A stretch of 64,000 nt of DNA from Epithemia pelagica (GCA_946965045.2 OX337231.1:2294001-2358000), one strand, 5' to 3'. Numbered from the stretch's first letter, positions 9,518 through 21,076 are shown. Numbers and translations are program-made. The notes: generated by a model from the letters alone, not told the origin.

Positions 9518-11548
9518 ATGGTACCAATGACAAATACAATCCGGAGAAACAGGATTCGAACCAACGTTATTGTCATGTCGGATGCTGGGAAGCCAGTGTT
9601 TGCTCGATATGGCAGAGAAAGTGAAATTGCTCGAATCTGTGGGTTGGTCCAGGCCTTGCGAGGGTCCATCTTGTACCATCCAACACCTCTCGTAGCCGGG
9701 ATGACTCACATTCATACAAGTCCCAATACCAAAACCGGTCCTGGCACAGCCTCTGCCCCGTCTCATGGCAATGGGGACGAAACGGGTACTTCCCTGGGTG
9801 AGATTCAATCCATTCAAACCAATTCCAGTTTGTTAGTGTTTTCGCATGTGGGTGCCATGACACTGGTGGCTGTGGTGGCCAGTCTGGATGGGAAAAACAA
9901 GGGGAAAACGACAAGAACGACGAGAACGGCGGTCGCTGCCGTGGAAGCTCAAGTTCGTCTGCAATTGGAGTATCTGTATAGTCAGCTTGTCTTTCGATTT
10001 ACCGATCAAATTCAACAAGCCTTTGCTCACAATACCAGCTTTGACGTACAAAGCCTCCTTGTGGGTACTGACGAAGGATGGATCCATGCTATTTTGAACG
10101 ATTCCTTCCTCGATACAACGACTCCCTCGACTGCTGAAATCCGACCGAATGATAACCAACACCATCCTCTACATGAAGAACAGCAACACACAAGAGTTCC
10201 CTTGTTTTTGTGTGCCAATCCATCCTTGGCTCCCCTCTCCACTGCCACTCGCCGAAGAATCTCTCATGTATTGCAACAAATCGGTCAGCAAACGGAAAAC
10301 ACCTTGTTTGCCATTCTGTTTGTTGATACGCAATTGGTGTGTTTGGTCCAACCCGACTATGGACCCCATTTGATGCGATGTACCGATCTGCACATGCTAT
10401 TGCACTTTATCGGACAACGACGAGAACGTTTTTATAGTGACTTGTGGTTGCCGGTCTGTCTTCCACGGCTTCATTCCTCGGGATTCTTGCATTGTTATAC
10501 CCGATGTTTGCATCGATTGTCTACTGGCAATGGAAACGACGGCCTCTTGTTGGCACTCCTCAGTCCACTGGGAACTACGGCCCAATTTGAAGCCTTTCGA
10601 CAAGCGGCCAACAATGTTGCCCAGCAATTGGAGTTGCCCTCTTCTTGTGCAGGAGACAATATCAACACAGAGACGCGACACAATCATTTGGTTTCGCCTC
10701 GTTCTCAAGAAATAGAAGACGACGACGAAGAGGCTGTCAATAGCGATGACGATTATGTGGATGCATCCGGAGAAGGAGACCAAATGATACCCTATGCTTC
10801 TATATCGTCCACGACAGCAACACCATGTAGTATTTTGGTAGAAGAATTGGAAACGGCCATGGATCCGATTGCGTCGGAAAAAATGTATCGTTCCCTATTG
10901 GACACGCTGGATCCTCATGCGATTCATTTTTGTTATCGCTACAATGCACCTGTCCGTACCAACCCCCAACAACGAACCCCCAAACTTGGATCGCCACGAC
11001 CAAGACGACGACGGCATCAGGAACCAGCACCAATCATTGGATACCTGACCCAATGCCTCTCATCGTCCATGACGAGTGGTACAAATCATGACACGACGAC
11101 AACAACAACCCCTATTGGTCTTCATTTCCTTTGGAGTATGTACCACAAACTGAGCTTGAGATTGCGTCTGGGTTCAGCCAGCAATGAATCCGTTCACGAT
11201 GCCATGACCATGATTGCTCGCGAAACAAAACAGGACCATGACAAGGACAATCCTCCTCCCGGTGTCGGTCGGTATTGTCCCATGACGGGATTGTTTGAAT
11301 CCTCACCCAACTTTACCGGCATGGCTATGGAATACCATGCCATCAAAGAAAACGATCACAATGACAGTCACGACGAGGGCATTACCTACTTTGGTATGAA
11401 TGGTGCAGAATTTGAATTGTACTATGCATGCCGTGGCAAACTCCAAACGCAACAAGCCGCCAGAGCGGGTGCACGATTGGTTCGACGACTCCAATCCCAA
11501 CAAGATGCACTCTTTCAAACCCATCCACCCACGTGGATCGAACACTAA
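9518..11548 (+). CDS. MON1: Vacuolar fusion protein MON1/SAND (Rab7 GEF subunit, longin domains)
   Basis: Motifs VIVMSDAGKPVFARYG, QLEYLYSQL, TDLHMLLHFI and WLPVCLPRLHSSGFLHCY match Mon1 signatures. Confidence 0.85.
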   Translation: MVPMTNTIRRNRIRTNVIVMSDAGKPVFARYGRESEIARICGLVQALRGSILYHPTPLVAGMTHIHTSPNTKTGPGTASAPSHGNGDETGTSLGEIQSIQTNSSLLVFSHVGAMTLVAVVASLDGKNKGKTTRTTRTAVAAVEAQVRLQLEYLYSQLVFRFTDQIQQAFAHNTSFDVQSLLVGTDEGWIHAILNDSFLDTTTPSTAEIRPNDNQHHPLHEEQQHTRVPLFLCANPSLAPLSTATRRRISHVLQQIGQQTENTLFAILFVDTQLVCLVQPDYGPHLMRCTDLHMLLHFIGQRRERFYSDLWLPVCLPRLHSSGFLHCYTRCLHRLSTGNGNDGLLLALLSPLGTTAQFEAFRQAANNVAQQLELPSSCAGDNINTETRHNHLVSPRSQEIEDDDEEAVNSDDDYVDASGEGDQMIPYASISSTTATPCSILVEELETAMDPIASEKMYRSLLDTLDPHAIHFCYRYNAPVRTNPQQRTPKLGSPRPRRRRHQEPAPIIGYLTQCLSSSMTSGTNHDTTTTTTPIGLHFLWSMYHKLSLRLRLGSASNESVHDAMTMIARETKQDHDKDNPPPGVGRYCPMTGLFESSPNFTGMAMEYHAIKENDHNDSHDEGITYFGMNGAEFELYYACRGKLQTQQAARAGARLVRRLQSQQDALFQTHPPTWIEH

Positions 11549-12103: not shown

Positions 12104-15100
12104 TTAAGTGAAAGAAGTCGAGCCTTCGTCCCGGAATGATTCGGATAACGAAAACGAACTGTCTGTGATGGACGACCGGGATATGGTTCCAAGACGTTTG
12201 TGCTCAATGTCGTTCGAGTTTGAAGAAATCAGTGGATTGGGATTGTTAGTCGGAGATGTGGACATTTTTGTCGGAGCAGTATTTTGTGAAATTCGTGGAG
12301 CATCATTTCTCATCTGTACAGGTGAAACAGATGCATCGTTTTGTGTCAGCAATGACGGAACTTCATCCTTGGGAGTTTGGTCGGAAGCCGCGTTTGTGCC
12401 ATGACTAGGTTTTGGGGTTTGGGATTCACCATCTCTGCAAGATAAGTTTTCTTCGTTTGCATGCTCTCTCTTTATGGCGTCCGCTTCCCAAAGCCCGTCG
12501 CTTGGTGGAGCTACATCATCCGTAGTTCCATCCGGTGTGTCCTCCTCTTCAATCACCGTCATTGGTTCCAGACGGTGGTCTGTCTGATCCTCTGAAATAT
12601 CCGTTGGCGAAGGAGGAGGCGTGGTGGTTCCGGCTTCGGCTTCTCCACTGTTTTTACTACCACTTTGCGTCCGGGCCACTTGATCGGCAAACATCTTCAT
12701 GTCACCACCCACACCGGAAATTCTAGTCTTGCCCAAATCAGTGAGCGAAAAACGACGAAAGGAATTGGATCGGTGGACGGAATCATTTGCGGAGGAAAGG
12801 GAATCCTGACGGAGTTCTCGAGATCGTACTTCACTGGTTAAGCGTTGTTCGGCACGTCGTTGTTGCACCAAAATGGGAACAAAAATAAGCAACAACATGG
12901 ACATGCAAACGGCAAATGTCAAACCGGCTGTAATGAAATATCGTGCCGATGGATTGTCCTTGTCAATGAGAAACAAGACGGGTATGCCGATAAGAAAGAG
13001 CTGGACCCAACTGAACAGGGCCACGCCCAGGTTTCGGCTTTCGCTAAATTCATCGCTGACATCTCGGGCACGGTAGGCTTGATAGCACACAACCAAAAAG
13101 GCGGACAAGTTTACGATGCCCACGACGCAAATCATGGCGACGGAAACGGGACCGTCGGCTGCACGGCAAGCTCCATAACTTTGATTGACTTGTCCTTCAA
13201 TTTCGTTGCGTTCCCATTGTAAGGGATCCACCAGGGTCCACGTCACCAGAGCCCAAAAATTGATGATAAACAAAATGGCAAAGGGTGCAATCACATCCTT
13301 TTCCTTGACTCGTATTCTGCGAAGCTGTGAGTTTTGAAAGAGTTTGTTGATTCTCCACAATTTGGAAAAGAGGGCCGACATGGCAATGGTAAAGCCCATA
13401 CTGACGAGCCACGGTACGGCCATGCAAGCCTTGCCGGCTGCGTCGGGCGAGACGATCTCATCGTCAAAACCCATTGGAATCAAGGCCATACCCATGACCA
13501 AGACACCCACGGCAATCATGGCCAAAAAGAGAGGTTGCAAGGTTCGAACAATTCGTGTGTTACGATGCTGGATAACCCAAACCAACAAAAAGAGGGCCGT
13601 GGCAATCACAATGCCCGAGGCTACCCATCCCACAACACGGACTGGTCCCAATTGATTCAAATCTTGATCGGGAATAATCCGGGCAATCAAATCAAAGGTA
13701 GAATCGGGACGGGTGCATCCCGGATATTGATCTTCATTGATAATTCCAAAAATGGCGGCCCCCGTGGCTGTTCCGGGTTCCAAGGCATCGATTTCCACGG
13801 TGACCATTAAGGTAACTTGCTCTCCTGCCACGAGATTTTCAAACAAGAGTTTCTTTTTGTTGGTGCCGTCGTCCTCATCGGACGCTTCGGACGATGGGTC
13901 TTGGCCTTGACGAGGGAGTGCTTGAACCTGAATCCAAAAGGGCAAGGATCGAACCACAAAGGTCACATTGTAGGGCAACGTATTGACAAAGGATATGCTC
14001 ATGTTCAACGACGACGAAGACGTCAATGACAGTGGCGATTGACCCAGTTCTCCTTCAAATTCCAACACATCCTTGAGAAAGACGACTCCCGGAGTTTCCG
14101 GACACGACCAACAGGTAAATTCTTGGGCATTCCAAAACTCGTTCCCCGCACAGGAATCGGCCGTTTGCACGAGATTCAACACTTGCCGGGCCGGGCTGGT
14201 GGTATCATTGACCATGCGTCCTTCCACGGTAGGAATATAGGTGGTATTGGAATACAGGGTTTTCAAATACTCGGCCACGATTTCTTGTTGAATGATTGAG
14301 CCATCCAGCTGTCCCGCTTGTTCGCCCGGAAAGACCAAACGACTATTCAAATAGGGGACAAAGTCATCAAATCCAGTACACACAAAACTGTCTGTGGCAA
14401 ACTTGTACAATTGCAAACGTTCCACGGGCACATAGTCGTTTCGAGTATCATCCCAAATATCCAACGCAAACAATCGAGATCCGGTCAGTTGGGTGTTGTA
14501 CGTTAATCGCAATCCAGACACTTGCAACAAATAGCCACCGAGATTGGTATTGTGTCCTTCAAAGGTCGCTTGTGACAGAGAATAATTGAAGAGTTGAAAG
14601 AGCGACACCCCACTCATGACACCCTTACACACATTGTTGGCAAAGGGCAACAAATCCCACAAATTGGAAATGTGAACGGGTCCTTCGGGCCATCCATCGC
14701 CACGAAAACCACCACTCGTGGCAAAGGCCAGTTCCGCCCCCGTATACCATCGGAGGGCATCGACAAAGAGAGATCCGGATTCACATTGTCCACCCTTGCA
14801 GCGTCGATAATTGCCTTCTCGTTGGAGAGGCATGGCGATACTGTGGGGTGCCACAACGGGGTCATTGTCCCGTGCTTCCGCGGCCAATTCGGCCAAGGCC
14901 ACCAGTGTGGCATTATATTGATCGTCTCGCACTTGGGGAGGAATTTCCGGCAAGGAAAAGTTCAAATCGTGAACCTTGACTTGAACGTCTTGAATCGAAG
15001 TGGAACTCAATGTCAAGACATGATGTTGATAGCGTTCATCGCGCAATCCAATACTGACCAACCACGTGGACGGTCCCACTTTGCGTGGTTCATTCAAGGG

Positions 15101-15928
15101 TGGTGCGTTTTCAAACACATCCAAAATCAAGGCCGGAGGATGGGCATGCTGCAAGACGGCTTGAATCAATTGTTCCAATTTCTCCTTGACATCGGCAAAA
15201 ATAAGAATGGGAATCCAACAAAAGGGATCGTCGTCGATTGTCGGAGGGTTGTTGTCTGTAGTACTAGTAGGGGGTTTCGGAAATCGACTCGTGTATTCGC
15301 CATAACAACCGGCTTGTTGGTTGATGCGAGCGATATAATCCAGTCCCCCCAACACGGTATCCAGTTGCGGTGTATTCATGGGTTCATTGGAATTGACAAT
15401 CGACATGCACGCCAATCGTGTTTCGGCATGTTGCAACAGGGCTGTATGATAGGAATGCCAGGAATTGCCCAAGGGGACTTGGACATTGGACAATAAGAGA
15501 GGCAAATCCTGCGATTGCAAATCGGAAATATCGCGTTGCGAGACATTGGAATCCACCTTGTTTTGTTGCAAAATGGAGGGTGCCGTCAAAAAGGCGGACG
15601 CATTGCACCAATATTCATAAATCAATCGATTGACACTCCAACCCAGGGGACTCATTTGAACAAAGGGACTTTCGCGATCCAAAAAGGGCAAAAACAATCG
15701 TGGTTCCGTGCCACTGTACGCTCGCGTCAAGGCGGCCGCCGCGGCGACACCTCCAAAACAAGTGGGGTCGTCGGGACCGGTGCATTGCGTCAAGGAACCA
15801 CTCAACAACGGAGCTGGACTCGCAACCAAATGAACGCGTTGCTCGACTGACGACAGGACACAATCCGTGGCCCCCAGGAGGAGAAAGAATCCAAATGAAA
15901 ACCAATGAAAGGAGCGCGAGCTTCTCAT
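12104..15928 (-). CDS. Class C (GABA-B-like 7tm_3) GPCR with 5'-nucleotidase-fold ectodomain
   Basis: Signal peptide. CD73/UshA-like motifs CxxxxxxxCFGGVA, LLLSNV, ESGSLFVDA, TSGGFRG, LLPFAN, LQVSGLRLTY, YKFATDSF, PTVEGR. Then a Cys-rich linker and a beta-rich domain. The 7TM region has RIVRTLQPLFL, CMAVPWLVSMGF, ALFSKLWRINKLF, FSESRNLG. Disordered C-tail. Confidence 0.85.
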   Translation of the reverse strand: MRSSRSFHWFSFGFFLLLGATDCVLSSVEQRVHLVASPAPLLSGSLTQCTGPDDPTCFGGVAAAAALTRAYSGTEPRLFLPFLDRESPFVQMSPLGWSVNRLIYEYWCNASAFLTAPSILQQNKVDSNVSQRDISDLQSQDLPLLLSNVQVPLGNSWHSYHTALLQHAETRLACMSIVNSNEPMNTPQLDTVLGGLDYIARINQQAGCYGEYTSRFPKPPTSTTDNNPPTIDDDPFCWIPILIFADVKEKLEQLIQAVLQHAHPPALILDVFENAPPLNEPRKVGPSTWLVSIGLRDERYQHHVLTLSSTSIQDVQVKVHDLNFSLPEIPPQVRDDQYNATLVALAELAAEARDNDPVVAPHSIAMPLQREGNYRRCKGGQCESGSLFVDALRWYTGAELAFATSGGFRGDGWPEGPVHISNLWDLLPFANNVCKGVMSGVSLFQLFNYSLSQATFEGHNTNLGGYLLQVSGLRLTYNTQLTGSRLFALDIWDDTRNDYVPVERLQLYKFATDSFVCTGFDDFVPYLNSRLVFPGEQAGQLDGSIIQQEIVAEYLKTLYSNTTYIPTVEGRMVNDTTSPARQVLNLVQTADSCAGNEFWNAQEFTCWSCPETPGVVFLKDVLEFEGELGQSPLSLTSSSSLNMSISFVNTLPYNVTFVVRSLPFWIQVQALPRQGQDPSSEASDEDDGTNKKKLLFENLVAGEQVTLMVTVEIDALEPGTATGAAIFGIINEDQYPGCTRPDSTFDLIARIIPDQDLNQLGPVRVVGWVASGIVIATALFLLVWVIQHRNTRIVRTLQPLFLAMIAVGVLVMGMALIPMGFDDEIVSPDAAGKACMAVPWLVSMGFTIAMSALFSKLWRINKLFQNSQLRRIRVKEKDVIAPFAILFIINFWALVTWTLVDPLQWERNEIEGQVNQSYGACRAADGPVSVAMICVVGIVNLSAFLVVCYQAYRARDVSDEFSESRNLGVALFSWVQLFLIGIPVLFLIDKDNPSARYFITAGLTFAVCMSMLLLIFVPILVQQRRAEQRLTSEVRSRELRQDSLSSANDSVHRSNSFRRFSLTDLGKTRISGVGGDMKMFADQVARTQSGSKNSGEAEAGTTTPPPSPTDISEDQTDHRLEPMTVIEEEDTPDGTTDDVAPPSDGLWEADAIKREHANEENLSCRDGESQTPKPSHGTNAASDQTPKDEVPSLLTQNDASVSPVQMRNDAPRISQNTAPTKMSTSPTNNPNPLISSNSNDIEHKRLGTISRSSITDSSFSLSESFRDEGSTSFT

Positions 15929-16858: not shown

Positions 16859-18490
16859 TCACTTTGTTGCCCCCCGCGATTGTGAGGGAGCACCCCGGTC
16901 CCCAAATGCCGATGAATATGTGAACTGTGAGATCAAGTTATTTCTTCGACTCTGGGGAAGCATCTTGGTAAACAAGTCAGCAATGTTGGTCTCCGTGTCT
17001 TCCTTGCCGACTCTGACGATTCCTGCGGCTGCCGCTTCGCGGACCGAATGATAGTTGATGGCGTTGTGTCGCTTGCTCAGGATGGATGAAGGTATGCTGG
17101 TATTCTTGACAACGCCTCGATTGTCACAGAGAATATTGGCCGGACCGACAACCGGAACACCGAACATTCGCAACTTATACCGCATTCCAACAATCAACTC
17201 TTTGGCGATTCTCATCGCCACGAATTCGCTCCCGAAACTGGATGTTTCCACGGTATTTTGGCGTTTCGAGAACCAAAGGATCGGAGCGTTCTGCAAGAAC
17301 ACCAATATGCCTGTGTGGGATTGACGCGTGACGACATTCCCAGCATGATCTGCGTCCACGAAGCACGTGATTTCCACCGGATTCCCAAGTGGTGTTGGCA
17401 TGTCTGCTGGTACTTCTTCCGCTACGTCCCCGTAAAACTCTTTCCACTCTTCGATTGGTGTCTGCGCGAAACAACTCTTGTCTAGCTTCACTGAGACAGG
17501 GTCGAATACCATCTTGAGCTTCGGGTGAGATTTGAGGAATGAAAACACGCAATACACAGCTTCAAGATGTCCCTTCCGCGGATTTGCTAGGTACTGTGAC
17601 ATGATCGAAACTTCCAAATAGATATCCACGCGGCCAATCTCGACCGCCCATCTCAGCACACCAATCAGCTGTTGGTACCGAGCTCTCATCTTATCATCAA
17701 GCTCCTCAGAAGTATCAAGCTCGGGCTTGTACGAAGTTTCGATTGGTACCCGCGCCGTTGTTTTGAGATGTTTTCCGTCCCCGTCTTCCAGCAACAATTG
17801 CTCCACCACTTTGATCGCGTTATTTACGTACTTCTCGCTGGACATACCCCATGCCATTCCCCCTGTGGGCAGGTTATGTTGGTACACCTGCGCCCCCAGG
17901 TACGTGGTCGGTGGTCCGATACTCCCTTTCTTTATCTTGTAATGGCAGTCTATCTCCTCAAACACTGGTTCAGGCTTGTGGCTGACAAGCAAGATGTCAT
18001 CAACGTAAACTAAAATCAGCTCATAGTACGGTTCCCCATTGTCACGCTTTCGTTCCCGTCGTAGGACACATGGATCCGCCTTGGTATCAACATATCCCAT
18101 GTCATAGAGAGTGCCCACCAGCGTCGCTCGCCAACTGGCTCCCGAGGATTTTAGCCCGTAAAGCGCTCTTGTCATCACGCACACCTTCCCTTGAAACTCT
18201 GAACCCACTTCCGCTCCACCTAGGAACCAAATCTTCTCGCGACATGGCGCATTAAGGTAGGCATTTCCAATGTCACAAGCCAGTACGTCTAGGTCATTCA
18301 AGGCTGCGATTAGAAACGCTATCCGAATTGAATCGCGACTCACAACGCTCGAATAAGTAAGACTTGACGGGGCATCTGTCATGTGCCCACCAGCCACCAG
18401 TCTGGCTTTTCTCCTCAGGTCCATCTTCACATCGAAAACCATGTGGCACTTGATTTCCGTATACCCTATTAGCTGTCGCCCTGCTCGCAC
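16859..18490 (-). pseudogene. Element A pol, RT and RNase H part (separated from the upstream pol by element B)
   Basis: KCHMVFDVKMDLRRKARLVAGGH, ALYGLKSSG, LVYVDD, CFVDADHAG, SEFVA, CDN, ADLFTK. Confidence 0.95.
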
Positions 18491-18869
18491 AGTCAAAGTA
18501 CACAGGGTACTCTGTAGTAGCTAGGGGCAGTACCTATATTGGCGTGGAGGTGATCAAGTCTCCACGACAATACACTAGAGAAGTTGTTTCACAACTTTCT
18601 GTTTGTTGATACTATAAGCTCTAGGTTTAGGAACTACATTCGATTCCTCATTTGATTCCTCATGAGGAATCAATTCCTCGTTTACTCATGGAGGTTAGCT
18701 TGGAACCATTGATGCCAATGGCTAGAGCTTGGTTACTATGCGACGGGCAATGCCTTCTCTAGTAGTAAGGCATTGCTCTTGGATACATAGTGGGGACACG
18801 ATTCTATGTCTCACAGATTCGAATCGTGACTGCCATATCGCCTGTCCGTCACACTGATTAACCGCGACT
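18491..18869 (-). repeat. 3' LTR of element B
   Basis: Same sequence as 28129-28507. Termini AGTC...GACT. Confidence 0.97.
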
Positions 18870-18910: not shown

Positions 18911-21076
18911 TCACCAACCTTGATTCAGTTTCCGAATCCTCTCAAAAACATCACGGCAGAGTCCTTTGGTAAGATAGTCCGCTCGTTGCATCATTGTTTT
19001 GATCTTGGAGATTCTAACTGTTGCATTCGTCCCTTTCACAGCTTCCCAGAACCAGTGGTATTTGTTGTTGAGGGACCTGGAACGGGACGAGAGGCGCTGG
19101 TTGTTGGCAAGAAGATACGCGCTGTTGTTGTCCTCATGGACTTCAGCAAAGATGGTTGGGGAGTCGGTGCCGAGGTCAAGGTGGTGGTTGATCTCGAACA
19201 AGATGTCTTGGAGCCACACAACAACACGCATGCTTTGCGAAAGCGCGACGTATTCGGCGTGGAAGGTGCTGGTGGCGATCTCACTTTGGAGCTGAGATTT
19301 CCAGACCAAGGGACAGCCGCCAAAATGGATGATGTATCCAGTGCGTGATTTGGCACTGATCGGTTCGTCCTCGGATTCACGGCCATAGAGGCCCATGAAA
19401 TCCGCATCCACATAGCAATCAACCTTGAAGGCGGTTGTTGGCCGAAAAATTGTTCCGCAATCTACAGTTCTCCAGAGGTATCTGACAATCATTTTGATGG
19501 CTTGGGCATGGGATTGTTTCGGGTTGGTTGAAAAGCGAGCGACTTGGGAGACGGCAAAACTGATATCTGGCCGTGTGTTGGTGGAAAGGTAAAGGAGCAT
19601 GCCAACGATGGAACGGTAGTTCCATTTTTCTTTCATCGGTGGTCCATCAGGGTCACTGCCAAGGCACACTTGGGAGGCTGGCACAAAGTTGCCATTGCAA
19701 TTTGTCATGCCTGTGGCCTCAACGATCTTCTTAATGAGCCCTGGTTGGGTCATTGTAATTGTTCCATCTTTCCGAGTGAAGTGGATGCCCAAGTACTCAG
19801 CAAAATCGCTGTCCACGGAGAGCTCGAATCCTCGAGCCTTGAGTCGTTTCACAAATTCGTTGATTGCGTCCATCGTCGGAGCGATAATACCACAATCATC
19901 CACCCAGAGAAACACCATCATGTTTTCTTTGAGGAAGACACATTCGTCGAACTTGCTCTGGGTGAAGCCATCGTTGAGCAAGGCTTGTCGGAGACGTTGG
20001 TACCATAACCGAGGTGCAACTGAGAGTCCATAAAGGCTCTTGTGGAGTCGGAGACAGGTTTTGGTGGTCTTGGTGGAGGAGAAACCGCGCGGGATATGGA
20101 TCCAGACAGGATCTTTCAACTCGGCCTGAACGAAGGCATTGTTGAAATCGATGCAAACCATTGCCCAATTGCGAGCCAGGGCAAGTACCAAAGCGATACG
20201 AATCGAGGCCCAGTTGACGACGGGTGAGTAGGTGTCGAAATCACCTTCTTGAAGATCGCCGCGGACACAATATCTGGCCTTGTATTTCTTGATGGTTCCG
20301 TCTGGGTGGCGCTTGCGCTTGAAGACCCAGGTACCAGGGATGATTCTTGATGTTGCTTCTTCCTCTGGAACCTCAGTCCATGTACCCTTGTTAGTTAGTT
20401 CTTCAATTTCTACTCTAGCCGCTTCTCTCCAATGGTCGATATCCTTGTCTTGTCTTGCTTGTTCGTAGGACAGAGTGTCTGGATCTGAAATGGCAACCTT
20501 GAATCCACTGATGTCATCAAATTCGGCTTGATTGGCGACATAGGATTGTTGGGCGGCGTCCATATTCTCGATGAGACGACTTGGTGAACGACGGACACGG
20601 TTGGATCGTCGAGCAGATGGTGCGTCGGAAGGAGGATCGCTTGGTAGCTCCCTCTGAGAAGGCGGCTCCCTCTGAGAGGAGGGCTGTCTTGAGGAGAGAG
20701 ACTCCCTCTGATGAGAAGAGGGATTGGAGGCTGGTGCCATGCGGAGAGGCGACAGTGGTGCTGGATTCTCCCTCTGTTCCGAGTGCACGGGGACAGGAGA
20801 CGACGGGGAAGGCAAAACGAGCGGTTCCGAGAAGGAAACAGCAGGTTGTGGCCTTGAAGGTGTCGCCGCGCGCGGAGGGACATCGCGCACTGGCGTGTTG
20901 GGAGGTGGCACGGGAGGCGGAGAAGGGAGTGGGTCACTAACCGACGGGGCAAGGCGAGACGAATCAATCGTGGAGGGCTGGGTGGTGGGGGTGGCTGGGG
21001 GAGTTCTGGGGACAGGGACGGCTGGCGTGTCAACAGAAAGAGGTACAGACGGAACAGTTTGTTCCATAGACGTAAA
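18911..21076 (-). pseudogene. Element B RT and RNase H part of pol
   Basis: GTWVFKRKR, YKARYCVRGD, SLYGL, LWVDD, DCYVDADF, EDNNSA, ADYLTKGL. Confidence 0.95.

Follow-up and report, generated by a model that had tools for sequence, protein, structure and literature searches.

A 64,000-nucleotide stretch of the Epithemia pelagica genome (GCA_946965045.2 OX337231.1:2294001-2358000; hereafter called the window) contains, on the minus strand at 12104-15928, a single uninterrupted open reading frame (ORF). According to the ORF list and its translation, it starts with ATG, encodes 1274 amino acids (aa) and has no internal stops. From our domain, structure and family analyses, we conclude with moderate confidence that the ORF is an intact gene and encodes a class C (GABA-B-like) G-protein-coupled receptor (GPCR) of the cell surface, which carries a catalytically dead, two-lobed homologue of CD73/UshA as its head and has no Venus flytrap. 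A first-pass annotation of this DNA had proposed that a CD73-like ectodomain takes over from the Venus flytrap in a class C GPCR; Pfam, Foldseek and VIA-align bore this architecture out.

Domain architecture and genomic setting

The encoded protein consists, in order, of a signal peptide, a two-lobed ectodomain with the CD73/UshA fold, a Cys-knot, an immunoglobulin (Ig) sandwich resembling PapD/ASH domains, a class C seven-transmembrane (7TM) domain and a disordered tail. The features are located as follows.

12104..15928, minus strand: complete single-exon coding sequence, 1274 aa plus stop codon (12104-12106); ORF list and translation.
15848..15928, minus strand: signal peptide, residues 1-27; hydrophobic span at 10-28, with nine N-x-S/T sequons in the Cys-rich region after it.
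14894..15847, minus strand: N-lobe, residues 28-345, metallophosphoesterase fold without catalytic motifs (pseudoenzyme lobe); VIA-align, with Pfam and profile comparisons null.
14822..14893, minus strand: inter-lobe hinge, residues 346-369, of low model confidence; predicted local distance difference test score (pLDDT) <50 at model residues 331-352, between the two aligned lobes.
14204..14821, minus strand: C-lobe, residues 370-575, 5'-nucleotidase C-terminal (substrate-binding) domain; Pfam PF02872, hidden Markov model (HMM) and hhalign alignments.
Codons within the C-lobe, minus strand: R409, 14702-14704; F429, 14642-14644; F515, 14384-14386; D521, 14366-14368.
14093..14173, minus strand: Cys-knot linker, residues 586-612 (C593, C606, C609); conserved Cys columns and two short hairpins in the model.
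13679..14092, minus strand: Ig-like beta-sandwich of the PapD/ASH/MSP type, residues 613-750; separate AlphaFold model and structure searches.
12854..13651, minus strand: class C (GABA-B-like) 7TM domain, residues 760-1025; Pfam 7tm_3, GABA-B2 match and seven hydrophobic spans.
12107..12853, minus strand: cytoplasmic tail, residues 1026-1274 (~250 aa), rich in Ser/Thr/Asp/Glu/Pro and unconserved; composition and 18% mean identity.

Pfam recognised the 5_nucleotid_C domain (PF02872) at residues 370-523 (E 1.7e-22), and the best sequence match of the C-lobe in the PDB was a Thermus 5'-nucleotidase (E 4.5e-11). The Pfam scan of the first 340 residues gave no match, with Metallophos absent even at E ≤ 1. 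The structural comparisons extended over both lobes. An AlphaFold model of residues 25-752, computed with 24 relatives in the alignment (mean pLDDT 74), matched the whole of CD73 in Foldseek (E ~5e-22), as well as snake-venom and bacterial 5'-nucleotidases, NadN and UshA over the full length. VIA-align superposed model residues 5-551 (protein 29-575) on CD73 26-549 with a Z score of 19.4 and ~445 aligned residues; the claim that the CD73/UshA two-domain fold is followed from start to end was therefore correct. The root-mean-square deviation (rmsd) of 8-13 Å over the whole ectodomain reflects the inter-lobe angle. The N-lobe alone aligned with calcineurin-like phosphoesterase domains (3jyf/3gve/5eqv) at Z 16.9 and an rmsd of 3.8 Å over 266 residues. 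All of the sequence strings quoted in the first-pass annotation are present, within 1-2 residues of the positions given there: C49-x7-C57-FGGVA, VASPAP (35-40), FLDRES (82-87), FLTAPS (113-118), LLLSNV (144-149), FADV (244-247), DVFEN (270-274), RRCK (375-378), SGGFRG (405-410), LPFAN (427-431), DSFVCTGFDD (513-522) and PTVEGR (566-571).

The part between the C-lobe and the membrane was modelled separately by AlphaFold with 70 sequences (pLDDT 85.3). Its Cys-rich linker is as previously described, and Pfam PF07699 (Ephrin_rec_like) matches the same place in the relatives P0102 and P0128. What had been called a 'beta-rich domain' can be specified as a PapD/ASH/MSP-like Ig sandwich. In the wide VIA-align search, it reached Z 12.6 to 9ijj_C, 12.4 to 2qsv and 11.8 to the HYDIN PapD-like domain, and the structural matches overall had Z 10-12.6 and an rmsd of ~2 Å over ~100 residues; the Foldseek matches included OCRL ASH, CEP192 PapD-like and FimC.

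The assignment of the membrane part to class C is based on a 7tm_3 match at residues 762-1018 (E 9.9e-39; 133.9 bits against a cut-off of 33.5; profile positions 6-250 of 251), which is the only Pfam 7TM match. Besides the signal peptide, hydropathy analysis predicted exactly seven membrane spans, located between 765 and 1021. The closest PDB sequence was the GABA-B2 7TM domain (E 3e-24), while class A entries among the PDB matches were few and all had E > 0.03. Neither the Venus flytrap (ANF_receptor/PBP1) nor NCD3G had a Pfam match in the 1274-aa protein. With the residue register set by the GABA-B2 alignment, the family retains the class C hallmarks listed in PMC3727952, namely the Cys residues at the top of transmembrane helix 3 (TM3) and in extracellular loop 2 (ECL2) (C835 in 136/136 and C921 in 124/124 sequences of the family alignment), the basic residues at the cytoplasmic end of TM3 (K856 in 131/132, R859 in 125/132) and the acidic residue at the cytoplasmic end of TM6 (E963 in 119/123). 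The Pro of the TM7 'PK' motif is invariant (P1018, 119/119); the following Lys position is I, L, M or V in the family, with Lys in 7/119 only.

The receptor locus is spanned without joints by DNA contigs of several public runs. These runs behave as DNA assemblies, and the matches from RNA libraries amount to one short metatranscriptome contig. Complete fused ORFs comprising ectodomain and 7TM domain occur in the MMETSP transcriptomes of Entomoneis, Odontella and Amphora. Because several relatives are thus complete ORFs in transcriptomes, we conclude that the ectodomain-7TM fusion is transcribed as one unit; a splitting of the two halves between transcripts, raised earlier as a possible objection, is not what these transcriptomes contain.

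One run has a 9-nucleotide in-frame insertion after 15264, in a poorly modelled Thr/Asp/Pro-rich loop of the N-lobe (~residue 222), and at 14669-14801 and 15371-15497 paired contigs with 4-6 differences resemble alleles. Downstream, the convergent gene at 9518-11548 (plus strand) encodes 676 aa with two longin domains of the FUZ/MON1/HPS1 family; its 3' end lies ~0.55 kb from the receptor stop codon, and it looks like an ordinary trafficking gene of the MON1/FUZ type. About 0.9 kb upstream of the receptor start codon, a Ty1/copia-type reverse transcriptase (RVT_2, E 1.7e-19) is encoded at 16859-18496 (minus strand), which is probably a retrotransposon remnant adjoining the receptor promoter region. 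Beyond it lies an additional long ORF at 18911-21067 (minus strand).

A receptor family with two output types

An exhaustive profile search returned 229 cluster representatives (50% identity) at E ≤ 1e-30. Among the relatives that were fetched, at least 149 were of the GPCR type and 25 of the cyclase type, and none combined both outputs. Every GPCR-type member with a name comes from a diatom: Epithemia, Entomoneis, Odontella, Cylindrotheca (two), Fistulifera (two), Seminavis (two), Amphora and a Bacillariaceae metagenome-assembled genome. The named cyclase-type members are Neobodo designis and Euglena gracilis. The 25 cyclase-type proteins (~1000 aa) consist of a signal peptide, the ectodomain, the Cys-knot, a single very hydrophobic transmembrane span and an adenylate/guanylate cyclase, without the Ig sandwich. 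The ectodomains of the cyclase-type relatives P0058, P0081, P0090, P0097, P0102, P0123, P0183 (Neobodo designis) and P0094 (Euglena gracilis) are 32-39% identical to those of the diatom GPCRs, across two eukaryotic supergroups.

When the C-lobe tree was rooted on UshA and CpdB of E. coli, all cyclase-type proteins fell into one clade (Shimodaira-Hasegawa approximate likelihood-ratio test 92) with a single change of output, nested among the GPCR-type proteins; the tree has a long outgroup branch, support below 95 and most of its rows without a taxon, and cross-contamination within MMETSP is possible. This nesting tentatively suggests a diatom-type receptor as the source of the module. Three further proteins, P0121, P0128 and P0161, fall inside the cyclase clade. 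Their ectodomain is the same, and behind it lie three to five hydrophobic spans, with no match to a class C 7TM domain, the cyclase HMM or another Pfam output domain; these proteins may have a third type of output or stem from broken gene models.

The modules of the receptor differ in how well they are conserved. Mean identity to the Epithemia protein (P0001) over 24 close relatives, and the share of alignment columns conserved at ≥ 90%, were as follows.

C-lobe: 54% mean identity; 26% of columns.
7TM domain: 55% mean identity; 27% of columns.
N-lobe: 42% mean identity; 17% of columns.
Ig sandwich: 32% mean identity; 11% of columns.
Tail: 18% mean identity; 1% of columns.

The C-lobe is as conserved as the 7TM domain, and the ectodomain behaves as a reusable, self-contained sensor module. 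The strongest argument for a sensor role is that one module serves two unrelated outputs, a class C 7TM domain and a receptor cyclase. The proposal that a dead enzyme has replaced the flytrap as the sensor is thus supported, both by the 7TM-like conservation of the C-lobe and by the presence of the same module on euglenozoan receptor cyclases, and we regard a receptor with a pseudoenzyme sensor as quite probable.

The disabled lobe, the ligand site and the mechanism

The motifs of the N-lobe were located by their predicted strand-end register relative to E. coli UshA. In this register, the DxH motif is gone in the family. Of the GD motif, the Asp alone is retained (D84; D/E in 169/174 relatives). 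The Asn position of the GNH motif is occupied by T, P or S in the family and by A116 here, and the position of the catalytic His by Pro117, with Pro in 55 of 71 GPCR-type proteins. The former His217 has become Asp246, and the former His252 is Phe here and Glu/Asp in most relatives (position 272). The statement that the N-lobe lacks every dimetal and catalytic motif therefore holds for DxH, GNHE, H, GHxH and the catalytic His, but not for GD, given its retained Asp. Profile comparison detected no signal between the N-lobe and the UshA N-domain: the hhalign comparison of the family with UshA covered the C-lobe only, and a forced global N-lobe run gave E 0.8. A genome scan for UshA relatives returned orthologues at 86-100% only, which were unfit for profile building.

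The lobe nevertheless contains well-conserved polar columns, at D54, D84, N100, D133, N148, D246, D270 and D335. Position 93 (codon 15650-15652) lies outside the canonical metal-ligand positions; 156/175 proteins have His there (FVQMHPLGW), and the Epithemia protein and its nearest relatives have Ser (FVQMSPLGW). A description of the N-lobe as devoid of any conserved His was rejected for the wide family on this count, and the dead-enzyme argument rests on the loss of the canonical motifs instead. By the strand-end register, every canonical His/Asn ligand and the catalytic His have been lost, and the ectodomain is a homologue of CD73/UshA but almost certainly not an enzyme. The metal site of the N-lobe appears to have been rebuilt as an acidic patch (D84, D246, D270), not to have decayed; we speculate that a hard cation could be bound there and a phosphate clamped but not hydrolysed.

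Aligning the C-lobe with venom 5'-nucleotidase and UshA by HMM and hhalign gave the residue equivalences below; conservation was counted over 149 GPCR-type and 25 cyclase-type relatives.

R409: CD73 R395, UshA R410; GPCR-type 109/126; cyclase-type 25/25.
F429: CD73 F417, UshA F429; F/Y in GPCR-type 124/128; cyclase-type 25/25.
N431: UshA N431; GPCR-type 116/128; cyclase-type N in 21, D in 4.
F515: CD73 F500, UshA F498; Y/F/W in GPCR-type 133/144; cyclase-type 25/25.
R375: enzyme equivalent not fixed; GPCR-type 107/121; cyclase-type 18/24.
D521: CD73 D506, UshA D504; acidic in GPCR-type 79/144; cyclase-type 6/24.
K378: CD73 R354; K in GPCR-type 48/124; cyclase-type 1/25.

These alignments confirmed the equivalence of R409, F429, F515, D521 and K378 to CD73/UshA residues that the first-pass annotation had proposed. 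Its further claim, that the C-lobe keeps the nucleotide-binding set, was tested by conservation among the orthologues and stood in part: R409, F429 and F515 are kept, but D521 and K378 are not. The family thus seems to have retained the base-stacking and phosphate-binding core and not the ribose contacts. A nucleotide ligand is no more than a plausible candidate, since three of the core contacts persist and two do not; we consider it somewhat less likely than not that the ligand is a nucleotide, a nucleoside or a closely related phospho-aromatic compound.

In the mechanism that we propose, the ectodomain would act as the ligand-sensing head of a class C receptor. The ligand would be bound in the C-lobe between the aromatic pair F429/F515 and beside R409, R375 and N431, at the site that receives the substrate's base and phosphate in 5'-nucleotidases. 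Once bound, it would alter the geometry between the lobes or within the dimer, a change relayed by the Cys-knot and Ig spacer to the 7TM domain, which would signal via the heterotrimeric G proteins possessed by diatoms; G-alpha and G-beta are both encoded by diatoms (PMC3727952). Only tentatively do we extend this to a 'substrate-trap' sensor, in which a nucleotide or phosphoester would be caught by the clamp and Arg, and the N-lobe would close with a Zn/Mn site rebuilt from carboxylates, without hydrolysis. If this possible, though rather doubtful, extension were true, these proteins would be the first metabotropic purinergic-type receptors outside animals. They would also constitute a protist counterpart of the ANF/Venus-flytrap domain, found on diatom GPCRs and euglenozoan cyclases and possibly on the GPCRs of Capsaspora and choanoflagellates.

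Several observations weigh against our interpretation of a nucleotide-sensing head that signals through its spacer. D521, the equivalent of the ribose-binding Asp, and K378 together make up two of the five named CD73 contacts and are not conserved in the family, and the equivalent of CD73 N390 is variable too. Two near-invariant, family-specific residues, C434 (14627-14629) and C517 (14378-14380), flank the F429/F515 clamp, and a disulfide between them may have given the former substrate pocket a new shape. Folding, instead of binding, could be the reason why the clamp, Arg and GG motif are conserved. The N-lobe equivalences follow from the predicted strand-end register and not from residue-level superposition, and are to that extent interpretative. 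CD73 dimerises through its membrane-proximal C-lobes, and it is the N-lobe that swings, so that in the receptor the motion would have to cross the Ig spacer to reach the 7TM domain; this spacer is itself absent from the cyclase-type relatives. Finally, the sole RNA-library trace of the exact Epithemia gene is a 254-nucleotide contig from a 2016 marine metatranscriptome, identical to 12158-12411 in the tail-coding part, for which DNA carry-over is possible.

The alternative that best withstands the data, although we consider it unlikely, is that the ectodomain senses something other than a nucleotide: a planar or anionic small molecule (a pheromone, a bacterial metabolite or a dissolved organic phosphorus compound), phosphate or polyphosphate, or a divalent cation at the acidic patch of the N-lobe. 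It would account for the poor conservation of the ribose-binding Asp, of one phosphate-binding Arg and of the N390 equivalent, and the Cys434/Cys517 pair beside the clamp suggests a re-tooled pocket. The many conserved polar columns of the N-lobe, including the His at position 93, are unexpected for a lobe without a task, and the ~229 representatives at 50% identity, together with the paralogues (two each in Cylindrotheca, Seminavis and Fistulifera), suggest diversified specificities. The best-conserved residues of the pocket are, however, the base-stacking and phosphate-binding ones of real 5'-nucleotidases, and nothing positive points to any of these other ligands.

Less probable again is an ectodomain that serves as a structural, dimerising or adhesive scaffold and keeps the obligate class C dimer together through CD73-like C-lobe contacts, on a receptor that would be active constitutively, respond to mechanical gating or answer to a partner protein. 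It is established that CD73 dimerises via its C-lobes and that class C GPCRs act as dimers. The PapD/ASH Ig sandwich next to the membrane has a fold common in protein-protein contacts, and conservation at the surface could mark an interface and not a pocket. A self-contained sensor is a better fit to the occurrence of the module on a receptor cyclase that has no Ig sandwich, and the conserved residues would correspond to the ligand contacts of the enzymes, not to their dimer interface.

That the ectodomain is still a phosphoesterase, with an unconventional carboxylate metal site and tethered to a receptor that senses its product, appears very improbable. In its favour, D84, D246, D270 and the E/D at 272 in most relatives occupy former metal-ligand positions in the strand-end register, and the substrate-binding residues of the C-lobe are retained. 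Such an enzyme would have to work with the catalytic His replaced by the near-invariant P117 and with DxH and the Asn of GNHE gone, in a lobe that has neither a Metallophos match at E ≤ 1 nor a sequence signal to the enzyme N-domain.

A fusion artefact, arising from two neighbouring genes read through by the ORF call or from misassembly, was rejected as practically negligible: RNA at the exact locus is minimal and an ORF is not necessarily a gene, but the 3.8-kb frame is free of stops and spanned by DNA contigs from several runs, and more than 140 relatives share the domain order, including the complete transcriptome ORFs of Entomoneis, Odontella and Amphora.

Significance and comparison with known systems

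Diatoms account for a large share of ocean primary production, and knowledge of the receptors on their surface is, as far as we are aware, close to nil. With its nucleotide-binding scaffold, the receptor described here is a concrete candidate for the perception of lysed neighbours, grazing, viral lysis or organic phosphorus. The nucleotide hypothesis is worth pursuing because diatoms scavenge extracellular nucleotides as a phosphorus source (PMC5825098) and are without P2X receptors (PMC11085791). The diatom GPCR survey of Port et al. 2013 reported N-termini of 40-730 aa and PBP1 in seven sequences and never mentioned a nucleotidase domain (PMC3727952). We found no paper on the diatom receptor family or on the euglenozoan cyclases, and the identifiers of the Seminavis orthologues, Sro2_g001080 and Sro3175_g344780, occur in no searchable paper. 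The database names of the diatom proteins are automatic, such as 'GPCR family 3 profile domain-containing' and 'GABA B receptor'.

The novelty of the bare combination of 5_nucleotid_C with 7tm_3 had been overstated. Krishnan et al. 2012 (PMC3251606) listed 5_nucleotid_C on a Glutamate-family GPCR of Capsaspora (EFW44378.1), and 5_nucleotid_C has been catalogued together with Ephrin_rec-like domains on Glutamate-family GPCRs of choanoflagellates and other close animal relatives (bioRxiv 10.1101/2025.04.15.649019). These receptors, which we compared by their domain-catalogue entries only, share the Pfam pair with the diatom receptor; Ephrin_rec_like is reported among them as well, and relatives of the diatom protein have such a domain as their Cys-knot. 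They may belong to the same family or represent an independent fusion. Neither the N-lobe nor the ligand site nor the function is analysed in these entries, and our own word and Atlas searches for relatives returned diatom, euglenozoan or bacterial-enzyme entries only. What is new here is the large diatom family, with a full CD73 fold whose catalytic lobe is disabled yet constrained, the spacer of Cys-knot and Ig sandwich, and the sharing of the module with euglenozoan receptor cyclases.

Compared with CD73 (NT5E) and UshA/NadN, the receptor has the same two-lobe fold, base-stacking aromatic pair, Arg of the SGGxR motif and Asn431 of UshA. Two disulfide positions of CD73 are matched by C49-C57 and C377-C382, and CD73 is likewise extracellular, with its C-lobe nearest the membrane. 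The receptor differs from these enzymes in lacking DxH, GNHE, H and GHxH, in having Pro for the catalytic His, an unconserved ribose Asp and the additional Cys434/Cys517, and in being anchored by a 7TM receptor instead of a glycosylphosphatidylinositol anchor or a periplasmic location.

With GABA-B, mGluR, CaSR and T1R, the diatom receptor has in common the 7TM domain, the TM3/ECL2 Cys, the Lys/Arg of TM3, the acidic residue of TM6, the Pro of TM7 and a large N-terminal ectodomain. It differs from them in that its sensor is a dead phosphoesterase, its spacer a Cys-knot followed by an Ig sandwich, and the Lys of 'PK' a hydrophobic residue. A precedent for the swapping of class C sensors is provided by GPR158 (the metabotropic glycine receptor) and GPR179. 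Both belong to class C but have a Cache sensor fold instead of the flytrap, and they are not known outside animals. Their 7TM domains are weak sequence matches of the diatom receptor, and the fold of their ectodomain differs. No homology exists to the purinergic receptors of animals: P1/P2Y are class A 7TM receptors and P2X are trimeric channels, with ligand sites inside the membrane domain or between subunits, and at most an extracellular sensing of purines might be shared.

A parallel in logic is found in the animal ANF_receptor domain, which occurs on class C GPCRs as well as on single-pass receptor guanylyl cyclases. The natriuretic peptide receptors and the kinetoplastid receptor adenylate cyclases follow the same one-ectodomain logic with an ectodomain of a different fold. 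The cyclase-type proteins described here are related to the Epithemia gene through the ectodomain alone, and the window encodes none of them. A pseudoenzyme would have taken over the sensor role of a class C receptor, with its module reused on a cyclase in another eukaryotic supergroup, which makes this family a natural experiment in receptor modularity, parallel to that of the ANF-receptor domain in animals.

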